Shown here one piece after another: positions 414 through 30,289 of a stretch of 32,518 nucleotides of DNA. A program made the translations under genes and the position numbers. This stretch comes from Octopus bimaculoides (lineage: Eukaryota): positions 16,008,650-16,041,167 of the forward strand of contig NC_069000.1 of NCBI RefSeq assembly GCF_001194135.2, written 5' to 3'. The notes under the pieces are model-generated. The model saw nothing but the letters and a program-made list of their open reading frames with translations. It did not search any database and had not been told where the DNA came from. Every line of letters begins with the position of its first letter. The stretch's first letter is position 1.

Positions 414-434
414 TCGGTTCAGTAGTAGTAGTAG
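414..434 (-). CDS. Gene 1 Thr-rich stalk micro-exon 4, (T)TTTTEP
   Basis: ttgtttaattttag| 21 nt |GTTAGT; phase 1-1; 15 nt shorter than its siblings, an in-frame difference. Confidence 0.65.
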
Positions 435-568
435 CTAAAATTAAACAAGAAAAATGAAATATTATATAACAAATCCAATATACTTTTCAATTCCTTTTAT
501 TAATTTAAAATAGTAAACTAGTCGGAAATCAAGATAAGATGTATAAATGTAGGAGCTGAGCTACCCGA

Positions 569-1203
569 TGTGATACCCGATGGTCCAAGGGCTTTCCCAG
601 TCTTCATTTTCTTAATTGCCTTATCTATTGTATTGCTATCAATTCTGATGGTTGGTCCCTCAATTGTTTCAATATTTGAAAGACTCTCCTTCTCCCAATC
701 ATTCCCCCACATTTAACAACCTTTCATAATGGCATCTCCAAGCATCTTTCTTCTCTGAGTCACTAAGCGCAAGCATACCGTTATCCATTCGTACACATTT
801 CTCACCTACCACATCTTTTTTTCTCTCTGATACACTGCTTTGTAATCCTGAACACCTCACGCCTCCAATCCTTACGTTGTATAACATTGGCAAAGCTCCT
901 TGTTATAATGCTTTGCTTCCACTGTTTTTCCAGTTATTCCAGGTATGTCTCTTTGCTTTTATACCATTGTCCACCTCCTTGTTCCACCACCAAGTCACCC
1001 TCGGCTTGGCTGCGACTTTGCACCAAGCACAAATTTGGTCAGCGGCACCCAGTAAATTGTCCCGCAGGAACTACCAGTTATCCTCTAAGATATACATGTC
1101 CCTTCCACTTCCGCCTTTCTATCATGAGAGCTTCCTGTTGGTTTGCTGGGTTTTTGAGCTTCCATAATCATATTTTCCAACATAGTGTTTTTGAGTCTCT
1201 CTA
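569..1203 (-). mobile_element. Degraded RTE-like non-LTR retrotransposon fragment (region upstream of RT)
   Basis: Broken frames give TWWWNKEV..IKAKR..WNNWK, AWRCHYERLLN and AIKKMKTGKALGPSGIT, typical pre-RT LINE motifs. Confidence 0.75.
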
Positions 1204-1572
1204 GTCCTAATTTGTTACTTCGTTTAACATTATCTTCCTGACAACGTAAATGTTATGTGTATGATAATCAGTACTTTCGTTTTCGTTCCATAGTGAAGGC
1301 GTTACATCAGAATGATGTAGATATAAGGCTATATACTTTGGAGAAACGAATTTAAAATAGAACCTGGTACAAGCCAGTATTATATTATTATTGACATCTG
1401 GCAGGATGAAAGCATGACAAACTGGACCTTAGCGGAATTGGAGCTCAGAACTCAAACGAACAGATATGCTGCAAAAGGTCTTTGACGAGACACTGCTAAT
1501 TTGTCCCATTAGTGGGCACAGAAGAATGCAATTGTGTAGAATGAAATTAAGATAAGAGAAAAATTTACTTAC

Positions 1573-1608
1573 TCGGTTTAGTAGTGGTAGTTATTGTTGT
1601 CGTCGTAG
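1573..1608 (-). CDS. Gene 1 Thr-rich stalk micro-exon 3, (T)TTTTITTTTKP
   Basis: ttgtttaattttag| 36 nt |GTAAGT; phase 1-1; no stop. Confidence 0.75.
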
Positions 1609-3183
1609 CTAAAATTAAACAAGAAAAATGAAATAACATACAGCAAATGAAATACACTTTTCAATTCCTTTTATTAATTTAAAATAGTAAACTAGTCGGA
1701 AATCAAGACAAGATGCATAAGTTTAGGAGCTGAGCTACAAGAATCGACTTAAAAATATTCCCAAACCTTATGATTGGAAATCGATCTTGAATTAGCATTT
1801 AATCGAAATATGGATGAGATTAACTTTATAGAAAAAGTTTGGTTTATATATATATGCACACACATGGCAGGGTGTCCCACACTGTATCTGTCTAACAAAT
1901 TTACAAATGTACTGACAAAGTATTGGTCTGTCCGGGGCTATAGTAGAAGACACTCTCCAAGGTGCCGTGCAGTGAGATTGAACCAAGAAAGCATAAACAT
2001 ATGGTTTAAAAGCAAACTGACTGGGAGAGGCATCTCTGTACGATGTGAACTCAGAAATAAAGGGGTGTGAATAAATACTGAAAAAGTCGTTTGTTCCGAA
2101 CTCTGATTCTGCTATTCCGATGTCTTTTAGCAACGCTGATAATATTTCTACTAAAGGCACAAGGTCTGAAATTGTTTGGAGAAGTGGGTAATGATTTCAT
2201 CGACTCCACTGGTCAAATGGTATTTTATCGACACCAAAGGATGAAAGGCCAAAGTTGACCTTGGCGATATTTGAATTTAGAACGTAAAAACGGTCGAAAT
2301 ACTAGGAAGCACTTTGAGTGGCGTGCTAACGATTCTGTCAGCTCACTAACTTTTTCTGAATAATAATTTATTCGTTACACACAAGGAAATTTCAGGTTAA
2401 TTTGAAAGTGTAATAGAGTCGGAAGCTTATAGAAAGCCATGAAATTCATAATTTGTTTTGATACTGTATTTTTTTTTTATATCAAAGCTTTTCATACATG
2501 TGATGGGCTAAAGTTAATTTTAGAACAGTACAGAAGAATGTGAGAATATATTTGAAAAATATATTCTTTGCTCTCTCTGTCCCCACCTCTATCTATGCAT
2601 CCCCACACGCTCTCTCTCCCTTTTTTCTCTGCGTGTATATCTTTATATATATATATATATATATATAGGTAAATGATAGGATTGCTTCAATTTTTCAGGG
2701 GTAGTCTGAAGTATCCAAGCAACCAGGGGATGTTTAAATCCGGAGGCACTCCTGGGAATTACTTGTGTGGGTACCGTCTTCGTTAGAGGGTATCCAGAGG
2801 CAGGTAATTTATTGTTTAAACCGCAGTTTATAATTATATAATCTACACATAATTAAAACAATGGCGAACTAGCCCAACCGGATTACTTCTTCTTGTCTTT
2901 GTTTCTCCATTCTCCACATAACTNNNNNNNNNNNNNNNNNNNNNNNNNNNNNNNNNNNNNNNNNNNNNNNNNNNNNNNNNNNNNNNNNNNNNNNNNNNNN
3001 NNNNNNNNNNNNNNNNNNNNNNNNNNNNNNTATATATATATATATATGTTTATATGTATAAAAAATTGCTATAGACAGCCGAGTGCAATGTGTTGACTAG
3101 ACACTGCTAATATGTTCCACTAGTGGACACAAAAGAATGAAATTGTGTAGAAAGAAATTAAGATAAGAGAAAAAATTACTTAC

Positions 3184-3219
3184 TCGGTGTAGTAGTGGTA
3201 GTTATTTTTTTCGTAGTAG
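3184..3219 (-). CDS. Gene 1 Thr-rich stalk micro-exon 2, (T)TTKKITTTTTP
   Basis: ttgtttaattttag| 36 nt |GTAAGT; phase 1-1; no stop. Confidence 0.75.
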
Positions 3220-27597: not shown

Positions 27598-27651
<54 letters not shown>

Positions 27652-27759
27652 ATTATGTTATATTCCATTAGGAATGTGGTAGAGTACAGTATAAAGCTCG
27701 TCCACCTTCAGAATTACCCAGTGCTATCGGTAGTACTATTATATACTTTCAAGTTTGAA

Positions 27760-28518
27760 TTTGGAGATACCATCGTATATTAAACAAGCATACAGTGAAA
27801 ATATCGTACGCAGCATCTAACAACATGGAGTACTACGTACATAAATACAACAATAGGAAAATAAACATGCAAACAACGTCTGTAGACAATGAACATACAG
27901 ATCAAAATAATACAGGATACAGGACCGGTAACAAAAATGAACAAAACAAAAATCACAAAAACTTAGATAATGTCCTTGACAGTTACAATAAGATCAAAAC
28001 AAAAACTGAAAATAAAGAATCAGTAAAAAAGAATGCAACATCAGGAACGCTTTAGTCACCGACAGTCAAACAGAACATTACAAAAACAAAAAGGCACCAG
28101 ATAAATACGAAAATAAAAATAGTACAAATAACTGCACCTGCCGCAAGAAATCCGCATACCTGCTCGTGAACCAATATCTAAAAAAAAACAACAAAAAACA
28201 TAAAACAAAAATATAATATACAAATGCACAATTACCATACCGCAACAAAAATATACATACATAGGTGTCTCAGAAAATCAGTTTAAAGTTCGTTATCGCA
28301 ACTATATCTCATCATTCCGAAAGGTAAACAGACGACACACAACTTCACCCGCAGACCTAATATAGAGATTGCAGGATGGAACGGTCATTAACAAAAAATT
28401 CACACCTACACAATACGCTATCCAGCACATGCGACCTTTGCCTCCTCCTTGGTAAACAAGCATGCTGAGAAAATTCCGATATGTCCCCACCGCGCCAGAT
28501 ATGCATTTTCAAGACTAG
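27760..28518 (+). mobile_element. Penelope-like retroelement remnant (Cys-rich linker + GIY-YIG endonuclease)
   Basis: YHRILNKHTVKISY...NM, NCTCRKK, YIGVSENQFKVRYRNYISSFR (28258), CDLCL, LVNKHAE..ICPHR; many stops and frameshifts. Confidence 0.7.
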
Positions 28519-28529
28519 ACACTGTGCAA

Positions 28530-29075
28530 TAATAATGAAACTTTGCAACAAATATGGACTTAACAGAACAAAAAAGTAGTACGAACATAAACCCGAAGGC
28601 ATCATCGAGAATGATAATGCAAAGATCCTATGGGATTTTATGATTCAGTGCGACCATGAGAATAGGAAGCCAGACAAAGTCTTAATTGAGAAAGAATGCA
28701 AACGATGCTGGATCATATATATAGCATGCCCGGCTGACAACGAGGTATGCGATAAGGAAGAAAGAAAAGTCAATAGATATGACTGGGTAGCTTGGGAAGT
28801 TAAGCGGTTGTGGTCGATGAAAAAAGTGGTAGTAGTGCCAATAATTGTTTGGAGCCCTGGGAAGAGCGAGTAAAAATCTTGAGAAGAACATGGAACAAAT
28901 AGGGGCTGCAATAAGAGTGTGAACACTTGCAGAAAATAGCACTGCTTGGAACCGCTCGAATACTCCGGATGGCGCTCGAAAAATAAGGGGTATTACCTTA
29001 GTTGATTGGTAGTGAACAGTTGGCAGCGTAGTACATCTCCAGCGATAGAAGCTGTGCAAAGACAATAAATAATAA
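28530..29075 (+). mobile_element. RLE-type (R4/Dong-like) LINE 3' fragment
   Basis: YEHKPEGIIENDNAKILWDF.IQ.D...RKPD...IACP.D...KV.RY...EVKRLW...VVPII, then LQKIALLGTARILR*, a 3' UTR and an aataataat tail. Confidence 0.8.
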
Positions 29076-29967
29076 TTATATTTCAGAGAATTTTCTCCCA
29101 CCCCTTTTTTCGCGCCAACTAATACCTTCTTGTTTATATATATATANNNNNNNNNNNNNNNNNNNNNNNNNNNNNNNNNNNNNNNNNNNNNNNNNNNNNN
29201 NNNNNNNNNNNNNNNNNNNNNNNNNNNTATATGCTGCTTTTCATAATCTAATAATAATACTGAATTCAAATTTTGGCTCTAGACGTGCAGTTTCGGTTCG
29301 TGGGAGGTGGGATAAGACAATTACATCGACCCCAGTGCTCATCTGGTACTTATTCTTTTTATCGGTCCCGAAAGGATGAAGTAGTAAAAAATGCTGCTCG
29401 GCATTTCGTCCGTCCTTACATTCTGAGTTCAAATTCCGCCACGGATGATTTTGGCCCATAGCCTTTCGGGGTCTCTAACATAAGCCACTTTTGAGCAGTG
29501 GGGTAAATGCAATCGACTTACCCTTCCACGAAATTGCTGACCTTGTGCCAAAATCTGAAACCAATATTTCTTATAATTTTCATGACATTTTATTTGCCCT
29601 CTAATTTCATTCTTTCATTCGCATTCATTCACCAATCTTTTCTCATATCCCTGCCCCTGTTTTAAGATATTTGCTTCTTTAATTCATGCTTCATTTACAT
29701 TTTATGTTTTGTTCTGCTGTTATTTTTATTCATCATTTTTTGCGTCGACTGCAGACCACTTTTTTGGCTGTTCTCATGTGTTAGTTTTCTTTCCCATTCA
29801 TCTGTAGTTTCATTCTTTTTCTCATCCTGTATTTCTTTGGTTTTCGACCGCTCTTCTTCTTCTTCTTCTTCTTCTTCTCTCCCCTCCTCCTTCTTCTTCG
29901 TTTTCTTCTATAACTAAAATTATATTTTCTTTAAAGATCTTTCTCTCATTTGTTTTACTACTTATAG

Positions 29968-30289
29968 ACGTTGCAATAACAAAAAATGACGCCTGCTAAT
30001 GGTATTTATATTGGTCTGACATCTAAAATGACTATTAAATGTCGGTATAATGTGAAGAACCTTCTTAATTTCAAGCTATTGAGAAACGAAGTTACAGTTG
30101 TATATATGGAATACTACAGGTCCATAAAAAGATTTAAAACAATTGTCAATAAGGATGATTTCGACTGCACTTTAGCTTATTGCAGTAAAGGTGAGGTTAC
30201 TTGCTGGAAACGAAATCCCACTTGCAGAGATGCAACATACTACAACTGTGGCATTATGAAAGAAGTTTCGAAACCTAGGTTTATGAAAG
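29968..30289 (+). pseudogene. Gene 3 V-like Ig exon with +1 frameshift
   Basis: Acceptor tacttatag|, donor AG|GTCAGT, 322 nt (321+1). Removing one A from the A6 run at 29981-29986 gives YVAITKMTPANGI...IKCRY...FDC...VTCWK..PTCRDATYYNC, colinear with the gene 2 V exon. Confidence 0.75.

Follow-up and report, generated by a model that had tools for sequence, protein, structure and literature searches.

Introduction

In teleost fish, the NITR proteins combine an N-terminal V-set domain with a second immunoglobulin (Ig) domain and are encoded in large tandem clusters that include pseudogenes, genes in mixed orientation and variability in the complementarity-determining region (CDR) loops; they are transmembrane proteins that signal through immunoreceptor tyrosine-based inhibitory motifs (ITIMs) or a charged transmembrane segment, and they carry J-like motifs. 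A V domain followed by a C2-type domain also makes up the ectodomain in the B7/butyrophilin, CD2/SLAM and JAM/CTX families, and in MAdCAM-1 (Ig-Ig-mucin) and the TIM and CD300 proteins (V-mucin/stalk-transmembrane) one or more Ig domains stand on a Ser/Thr/Pro-rich, presumably O-glycosylated stalk. Among invertebrates, the FREPs of molluscs and the VCBPs of amphioxus are secreted proteins with N-terminal Ig domains that form diverse multigene families. To our knowledge, no diversified immune-recognition molecules have been described in cephalopods, and our search of the literature was likewise empty. Here we analyse a stretch of 32,518 nucleotides of the Octopus bimaculoides genome, hereafter the window, which is identical, including its gaps, to approximately positions 16,008,650-16,041,167 of chromosome CM046620.1 in assembly GCA_001194135.2 and which holds three related immunoglobulin superfamily (IgSF) genes, referred to as gene 1 (LOC128250266), gene 2 (LOC128250265) and gene 3 (LOC128250272).

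The original prediction for this DNA described a cluster of divergent V-C receptor genes hidden among repeats. The genes are not hidden, since all three already exist as 'uncharacterized' RefSeq models and some of their paralogues bear the UniProt name 'Ig-like domain-containing'. Our data give good support to the view that they belong to an octopod-restricted multigene family of V-C2-type IgSF proteins that evolves by birth and death, with accelerated amino-acid change focused on the loops.

Results

Two intact leader-V-C genes

Reading the window in six frames located its V- and C-like exons, and the gene 1 leader, used as a DNA query at low stringency, returned three further leader exons, the four being 62-80% identical at the DNA level. 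The exon inventory thus agrees with what had been predicted: there are three V-like exons of 321, 324 and 322 nt, the third differing in length from the other two, together with two C-like exons (330 and 328 nt) and four homologous leader exons, at or next to the positions proposed for them. All junctions are GT-AG and, as had been noted, nearly all are in phase 1, the exceptions being the donor of the gene 2 C exon (phase 2) and the frameshifted 5' end of the gene 3 V exon. Spliced by hand, gene 1 equals RefSeq XP_052830963 and gene 2 equals RefSeq XP_052830961 at every residue, and the claim that two intact leader-V-C proteins assemble therefore holds.

Gene 1 lies on the minus strand. Its leader exon (11559-11682) runs for 41 codons from the ATG to a phase-1 GT donor and encodes the hydrophobic core MKLLFIISL behind an N-terminal extension that is kept in paralogues. 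The V-like exon (8424-8744, 321 nt, phase 1 to 1) encodes the B- and F-strand cysteines, a DxGxYxC motif and the family signature FDC...CWK...TC, and the C-like exon (7097-7426, 330 nt, phase 1 to 1) encodes a B/F cysteine pair, the C-strand tryptophan and one extra conserved cysteine. These are followed by three 36-nt mucin mini-exons, APPKITTTTAKP at 3749-3784 and TTTKKITTTTTP at 3184-3219 (both phase 1 to 1) and TTTTTITTTTKP at 1573-1608, of which the last, when its donor is read through, gives the SK-stop end of isoform X1. A fourth copy (TTTTTEP, 414-434, minus strand), shortened to 21 nt and followed by a weaker GTTAGT donor, is absent from the RefSeq models and marks the start of the region originally singled out. 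The resulting tail has 21 threonines in 36 residues, and the gene 1 protein carries five N-x-S/T sites. Because the mini-exon units are symmetrical (phase 1-1), the length of the stalk can be changed by duplicating a unit or skipping an exon. All four mini-exons sit within tandem duplicates at 43-568, 1215-2046, 3093-3670 and 3737-4000 (260-590 bp, 82-87% identical). The mucin stalk attributed to the family as a whole is accordingly present in gene 1, as its Thr-rich tail, and missing from gene 2.

The 3' end of gene 1 runs off the start of the window, so that its leader, V, C and mini-exons lie inside and its terminus does not. Beyond window base 1 the gene enters a gap of 2,089 Ns, and its annotated ends (…KPSK or …KPR) hinge on donor read-through or on which of two candidate acceptors is used in a small exon past this gap, 2.6 kb beyond the window start (24328-24372 of the neighbouring sequence L001). 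The acceptor used by RefSeq leads to Arg-stop; the upstream acceptor opens a frame (ILRVKWAWRKPKSNA...) that matches the basic tail of the O. vulgaris model P0012, and this frame reached no convincing anchor.

Gene 2, also on the minus strand, consists of a leader exon (MLLAIIILTMASYTSA plus a phase-1 donor, 23316-23364), a V-like exon (20897-21220, 324 nt), a C-like exon (19094-19421, 328 nt, entered in phase 1 and left in phase 2) and a terminal coding exon (17400-17436) that encodes (R)NYSEPLKQTTP and a stop, with no anchor sequence. Its protein has four N-x-S/T sites. At the position of the B-strand cysteine the V domain has isoleucine, and a counterpart on a contig of the Logan collection (L004 164-469) has arginine there; the mature protein has seven cysteines, and a free cysteine or altered pairing is therefore possible. 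RefSeq also models an isoform X1 of gene 2 (P0010), which looks like a chimeric prediction through repeats: its N-terminal extension matches the repeat-derived open reading frame (ORF) at 28970-29065 (minus strand) at only 68%, and its true first exon is in the neighbouring sequence L002, at a distance of more than 100 kb.

Neither assembled protein contains a transmembrane or glycosylphosphatidylinositol (GPI)-type segment, and a search of the window and L001 with paralogue tails found no transmembrane or GPI exon for either gene. The term 'receptor', under which both had been predicted, is thus not borne out for the window genes themselves.

Predicted structures point to V-set-like and C-type Ig domains

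Pfam gave no Ig match to any window exon translation (E ≤ 10) or to any window protein. Among 40 relatives, V-set was touched by one (E 0.021) and 'ig' by four (best 4.8e-5); in a few paralogues there were sub-threshold matches to ig, Ig_2, Ig_3 and C2-set_2, the last at E 0.0057 in P0004, below the cut-off. In line with the original prediction, which could name no family, Pfam assigned neither the window proteins nor their relatives to a named family. A family profile built from eight sequences and run against the PDB sequences ranked an antibody light chain first (E 0.006), followed by CEA and the T-cell receptor (TCR) alpha V domain, and the light-chain alignment spans the F strand of V through the C domain.

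We next turned to predicted structures. The AlphaFold2 (AF2) model of the family protein P0001 comprises two beta-sandwich domains, with block values of the predicted local distance difference test (pLDDT) of 58-91, mostly above 70, and a Foldseek search with the full model returned 1,022 hits in the PDB at E ≤ 1e-3, with Fab light chains and the V-C ectodomain of BTN2A1 at the top. Modelled alone with a 32-sequence alignment, the gene 1 V exon reached a pLDDT of 81.6 and a predicted template-modelling score (pTM) of 0.77; the model has the nine strands A, B, C, C', C'', D, E, F and G, as in V-set domains, and its top 50 Foldseek PDB matches are all V-set (nanobodies, ICOS, TCR Vβ, MOG and CD8α among them), with template-modelling scores of 0.5-0.68 (0.6-0.68 for the best of them) and root-mean-square deviations of 3-5 Å. 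The modelled C domain (residues 152-254) has seven strands, with C173/C244 and W195 invariant, and a profile of the C domain only drew 60 matches from the PDB sequences at E ≤ 1, antibody C-kappa domains making up almost all of them (best E 0.027). The Ig fold that had been proposed is therefore what structure prediction returned, both as a V-set fold and as a two-domain V plus C match.

The sequences retain landmarks of this fold. The B-F cysteines and the D-x-G/A-x-Y-x-C motif appear as ALIC...DEGPYRC in the V domain of gene 1 and as IKC...DATYYNC in that of gene 3; gene 2 has DVATYSC, with its B-strand cysteine replaced. The C-strand tryptophan that is invariant in V-set domains is replaced family-wide by a conserved phenylalanine (F75 of P0001). 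There are extra cysteines, three in the V domain (FDC, CWK and TC) and a fourth in the C domain; one way in which they might pair is an interdomain bond between the EF loop of V and the DE loop of C. Collectively, the models and profiles support the assignment of these exons to putative V-set-like and C-type Ig-like domains.

An octopod-restricted family in a tandem array

A word-seeded search with gene 1 as the sole query found only gene 1, and an alignment query found eight proteins, all from Octopus. Exhaustive HMMER profile search of 1.84 billion representative proteins yielded 48 matches, about 45 of them taken as relatives, and the relatives traced come from O. bimaculoides, O. sinensis, O. 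vulgaris and Argonauta hians, apart from one bivalve and one bacterial protein. We rejected the bacterial 'gliding motility' protein P0015 (4,447 aa, 30 weak stretches) as a repeat-driven false relative, and the bivalve Ig-repeat protein P0054 (E 8e-4, marginal, with a chitin-binding domain) as sharing generic C2/I-set motif similarity only. All relatives are 'uncharacterized' at NCBI, with a few named 'Ig-like domain-containing protein' automatically by UniProt, and literature searches by locus, accession and keyword found no description of the family.

Paralogues end in one of three ways: with no tail, as secreted proteins; with a hydrophobic GPI-like C-terminal signal (P0026, P0027, P0030 and P0037); or with a transmembrane helix and cytoplasmic tail (P0023 and the 420-aa P0039). 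Inspection by eye revealed no clear ITIM or immunoreceptor tyrosine-based activation motif (ITAM) in the two transmembrane paralogues, which are distant ones.

The neighbouring sequence, reached via two paralogues, places the window at one edge of a tandem array, at about 15.99-16.27 Mb of CM046620.1. The 163 kb sampled contain, on both strands, 15 V-like exons (11 open, four with stops) and 11 C-like exons (10 open). O. vulgaris has one fused gene model that strings five gene-1-like V-C-mucin units over 173 kb, and copy number therefore differs between species. The next gene past gene 1, outside the window, encodes a ubiquitin-conjugating enzyme (Pfam UQ_con, L001 33267-34340) and marks the edge of the array.

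Rapid divergence concentrated at the V-domain tip

The three window copies are 26-36% identical, in keeping with the predicted figure of about 40% or less by eye. Between closer paralogues, at synonymous divergences (dS) of 0.05-0.35, Nei-Gojobori ratios of non-synonymous to synonymous substitution rates (dN/dS) range from 0.8 to 2.1 for V exons, for which this test had been suggested, and from 0.8 to 3.9 for C exons. When codons were divided according to scaffold positions defined on a separate, distant subfamily, the scaffold codons of close paralogues gave dN/dS of 0.24-0.42 and the remaining codons 0.8-2.4, and in four independent pairs pooled the non-scaffold codons showed an excess of non-synonymous over synonymous change (odds ratio 1.6, p 0.04). 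About 30 scaffold residues are thus under purifying selection, and non-scaffold change proceeds at or above the silent rate.

Several exons also diverge faster than the DNA around them. In six paralogue pairs, exon divergence is 2-3.4 times that of the exons' own flanking introns, compared over about 650-740 nt (330-360 nt for two C-exon pairs), with p from 2e-3 to 1e-7. The gene 2 V exon differs by 21.5% from its counterpart on the Logan contig, which derives from public reads, and its flanking introns differ by 10-14% (odds ratio 1.8, p 0.001). These divergence tests use short sequences and partly non-independent pairs. Across six close paralogues the C'C'' and FG loops are the most variable, followed by DE and BC, and these four make up the CDR end of a V domain. 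The number of distinct residues per site is 3.2 in the CDR-equivalent loops, whereas the bottom loops and strands have 1.8 (Mann-Whitney p 1e-6 and 3e-4).

Probable decaying copies of the gene and its leader

Gene 3 lies on the plus strand. Its V-like exon (29968-30289, 322 nt) is mismatched in frame to a phase-1 leader and has an in-frame TAA upstream of an internal ATG, and no C exon follows it within the window; RefSeq nonetheless models the exon as a 113-aa protein (P0007). Gene 3 is probably a pseudogene or fragment, a decaying copy. Upstream of its V exon, the pseudo-leader L3 (27341-27472, plus strand) has a 4-nt deletion that turns its reading into MLL-stop, and an orphan pseudo-leader, L4 (24958-25087, minus strand), is 79.5% identical to L3 and shares the same MLL-stop lesion. 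L4 is inverted relative to L3 and a mariner fragment lies between them, an arrangement that points to inverted duplication followed by insertion. The differing orientation and pseudogenised copies reported earlier are hence both present (the V exon of gene 3, L3 and L4 are all broken), and tandem duplication, inversion and pseudogenes fit the birth-and-death family that was proposed.

An upstream ATG is kept in three of the four leader exons (at 11682 in gene 1, about 23445 in gene 2 and about 27336 in L3) and lost in L4. In gene 1 this ATG shares the reading frame of the signal peptide and adds an extension similar to the N-terminal ends of distant paralogues; in gene 2 it is out of frame and may act as an upstream ORF.

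Gaps and repeats

The window is AT-rich, with microsatellites, and contains 12 runs of N, none of which touches an exon (the closest is 154 nt away); long ORFs spanning these runs are artefacts. The O. vulgaris counterpart P0012 and the paralogues show the same leader-V, V-C and C-mucin joins, and the gaps at 9234-9313, 10893-11176, 5029-5302, 19808-20023 and 22811-22990 therefore need hide no coding exon. The gap at 2924-3030, among the tandemly duplicated mini-exon units, may conceal one more mini-exon.

Between the promoter side of gene 1 and the end of gene 2 sits the tail of a non-long-terminal-repeat retrotransposon ORF2 (13152-13982 and 14536-14742, minus strand; Pfam zf-RVT, E 6e-6), split by two assembly gaps. 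The mariner-type transposase fragment between L4 and L3 occupies 25894-26277 on the minus strand (Pfam Transposase_1, E 2e-10). At least five copies of a repeat of about 200 bp resembling a short interspersed nuclear element (12366-12569, 22991-23193, 8256-8377, 2193-2344 and 29313-29520; 72-93% identity) are the source of several spurious ORFs, and a degenerate telomere-like 19-mer array (AAACCTTAACCGTAACCCT, 3.6 copies) lies at 10435-10502 within intron 1 of gene 1.

Discussion

We consider it probable that the window is the edge of an octopod-restricted IgSF array whose exported V-C proteins diversify their binding tip in the germline. The unit of this array would be a leader exon, a V-set-like exon, a C-type Ig exon and a variable tail. 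The products of the two intact genes would be made with a signal peptide and exported as N-glycosylated two-domain proteins: the gene 1 ectodomain would stand on a Thr-rich, presumably O-glycosylated stalk built from duplicated 36-nt symmetrical mini-exons, and gene 2 would yield a short soluble protein. Two copies, gene 3 and the fourth leader, would be in decay, and membrane-bound forms, whether transmembrane or GPI-like, would come from other paralogues. The tip of the V domain may bind an extracellular partner, with binding specificities diversified in the germline by duplication and positive selection, as in multigene immune-type receptor families.

Several observations weigh against this interpretation. 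The window proteins are unrecognised by Pfam or other curated models, and their assignment to the Ig fold is based on predicted rather than solved structures and on marginal profile E-values. The hydrophobic core of the gene 1 signal peptide is short, and the C-terminus of this gene falls in or beyond the 2,089-N gap. Exon divergence is about equal to intron divergence in the pairs that involve the gene 3 V exon and in comparisons of the gene 2 V exon with paralogues from L002, and the clearest pairs in which exons outpace introns come from L002, outside the window. A dN/dS near 1 is equally expected under relaxed constraint, gene conversion that homogenises introns could inflate the contrast between exons and introns, and the loops were assigned from one AF2 model and a MAFFT alignment.

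On one rival reading, the genes would be non-functional relics of a recently amplified segment, their ORFs open by chance and their RefSeq models prediction artefacts. The mean dN/dS of about 1, the many stops and frameshifts among copies (including, in the window, the gene 3 V exon, L3 and L4) and the absence of Pfam support and of literature on the family all point this way. Against it, reading frames are still open in 11 of the 15 V exons and in 10 of the 11 C exons, even at nucleotide divergences of 10-30%. Splice sites and phases hold over 4-6 exons, and the roughly 30 scaffold positions with dN/dS of 0.24-0.42 include all structural cysteines, tryptophans and tyrosines and are kept in three Octopus species and in Argonauta. 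Given this conservation of the scaffold across four species, we regard such a reading as very unlikely. Fast divergence focused on loops fits immune recognition or allorecognition but fits other recognition roles as well. Our favoured guess, offered with low confidence, is immune or other non-self recognition, which we rank above a neural or adhesive role, followed by a secreted reproductive or mucus role and lastly by relics.

Cell adhesion or neuronal wiring would cast these genes as small V-C2 proteins, be they secreted, GPI-linked or transmembrane, for homophilic or heterophilic recognition between cells (compare Dpr/DIP, IgLON, nectin and JAM/CTX), expanded along with the octopus nervous system. 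Adhesion genes are known to have expanded in octopods in a lineage-specific way, and the two-Ig architecture with GPI-like tails or transmembrane forms in paralogues would suit this role, as would the weak C2-set_2 (CD80-like) matches. Wiring families, however, are usually under purifying selection and have conserved orthologues, and the present genes show dN/dS values of about 1 or above, exons more diverged than introns, a copy number that varies between species, frequent pseudogenes and, in both intact window genes, no anchor; we hold this role to be unlikely. A role in a fast-evolving fluid or coat, be it reproductive (gamete or egg-coat), mucus, salivary or venom, and driven by sexual conflict or by arms races between prey and predator, would account for the exons evolving faster than introns, a pattern that genes for toxins and for gamete recognition classically show; gene 2, like several paralogues, stops soon after the C domain with no anchor, and the tail of gene 1 is of mucin type. 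Yet paralogues such as P0039, with a transmembrane segment and cytoplasmic tail, point to signalling or anchoring at the cell surface, and no known venom or reproductive protein of cephalopods turned up as similar in the HMMER search of 1.84 billion proteins or in Pfam on the relatives; we consider such a role improbable. The fullest version of the preferred reading, a lineage-specific octopod array of germline-diversified V-C recognition proteins with positively selected tip loops, secreted, GPI-linked and transmembrane forms, and an immune or self/non-self role, is a possibility that we advance with reserve.

The genes offer comparative immunologists and evolutionary biologists a candidate set that is octopod-only, tandem, faster-evolving in its exons than in its introns and most variable in the CDR-equivalent loops of a predicted V domain. 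Even if the role were adhesive or reproductive, they would illustrate an Ig scaffold that has drifted past the reach of sequence models with its fold kept, and gene 1 provides an example of a mucin stalk built through duplication of a 36-nt symmetrical exon. The novelty is limited, in that the genes are already uncharacterized RefSeq models and IgSF multigene families are common in animals.

The original prediction pointed to TIM and CD300, and this resemblance is loose: neither has a C domain beside its single V domain, and the V-C2 families (B7/butyrophilin, CD2/SLAM, JAM/CTX and the NITRs) together with MAdCAM-1 are closer. Gene 1 shares with MAdCAM-1, TIM and CD300 the placing of Ig domains on a stalk, which in its model is 36 residues long with no transmembrane segment in the assembled sequence, unlike the transmembrane TIM and CD300 proteins; gene 2 has no stalk at all. 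We rejected membership in TIM, as a C domain follows V, the window genes have no transmembrane segment or tail and the cysteine pattern differs from the six-cysteine, metal-ion-dependent pocket, and membership in CD300, whose proteins have one IgV domain, a short stalk and a charged transmembrane segment or ITIM tail, as the window genes have a two-domain ectodomain and no transmembrane segment. The FREPs and VCBPs resemble the octopod family in being secreted members of diverse invertebrate families with N-terminal Ig domains. Pfam found no fibrinogen match in 40 family members, which excludes them from the FREPs, and their V-C architecture with no chitin-binding domain in octopod members sets them apart from the VCBPs, which have two V domains and a chitin-binding domain; the exhaustive profile search found no sequence similarity to either.

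The B7/butyrophilin, CD2/SLAM and JAM/CTX families share the order of V and C2-type domains with the window genes; BTN2A1 ranks with the leading structural matches, and the strongest hint from Pfam is C2-set_2. CD2-family V domains lack the canonical disulfide, as does the V domain of gene 2, and CD48 and CD58 have GPI-type tails like those of some octopod paralogues. These vertebrate families nonetheless show no significant sequence similarity to the octopod proteins, lack their extra cysteine pattern and lead one to expect the canonical C-strand tryptophan where the octopod V domain has phenylalanine. For mode of evolution and probable manner of working, the best match is to the teleost NITRs and similar germline-diversified V-type families, as a functional analogy and not a homology: the window genes differ from NITRs in lacking an anchor, a J motif and any detectable sequence relationship. 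Should an immune or self/non-self role prove correct, the octopod V-C system would be a convergent cephalopod counterpart of the multigene V-type receptors of fish and other vertebrates and of the FREPs of snails.

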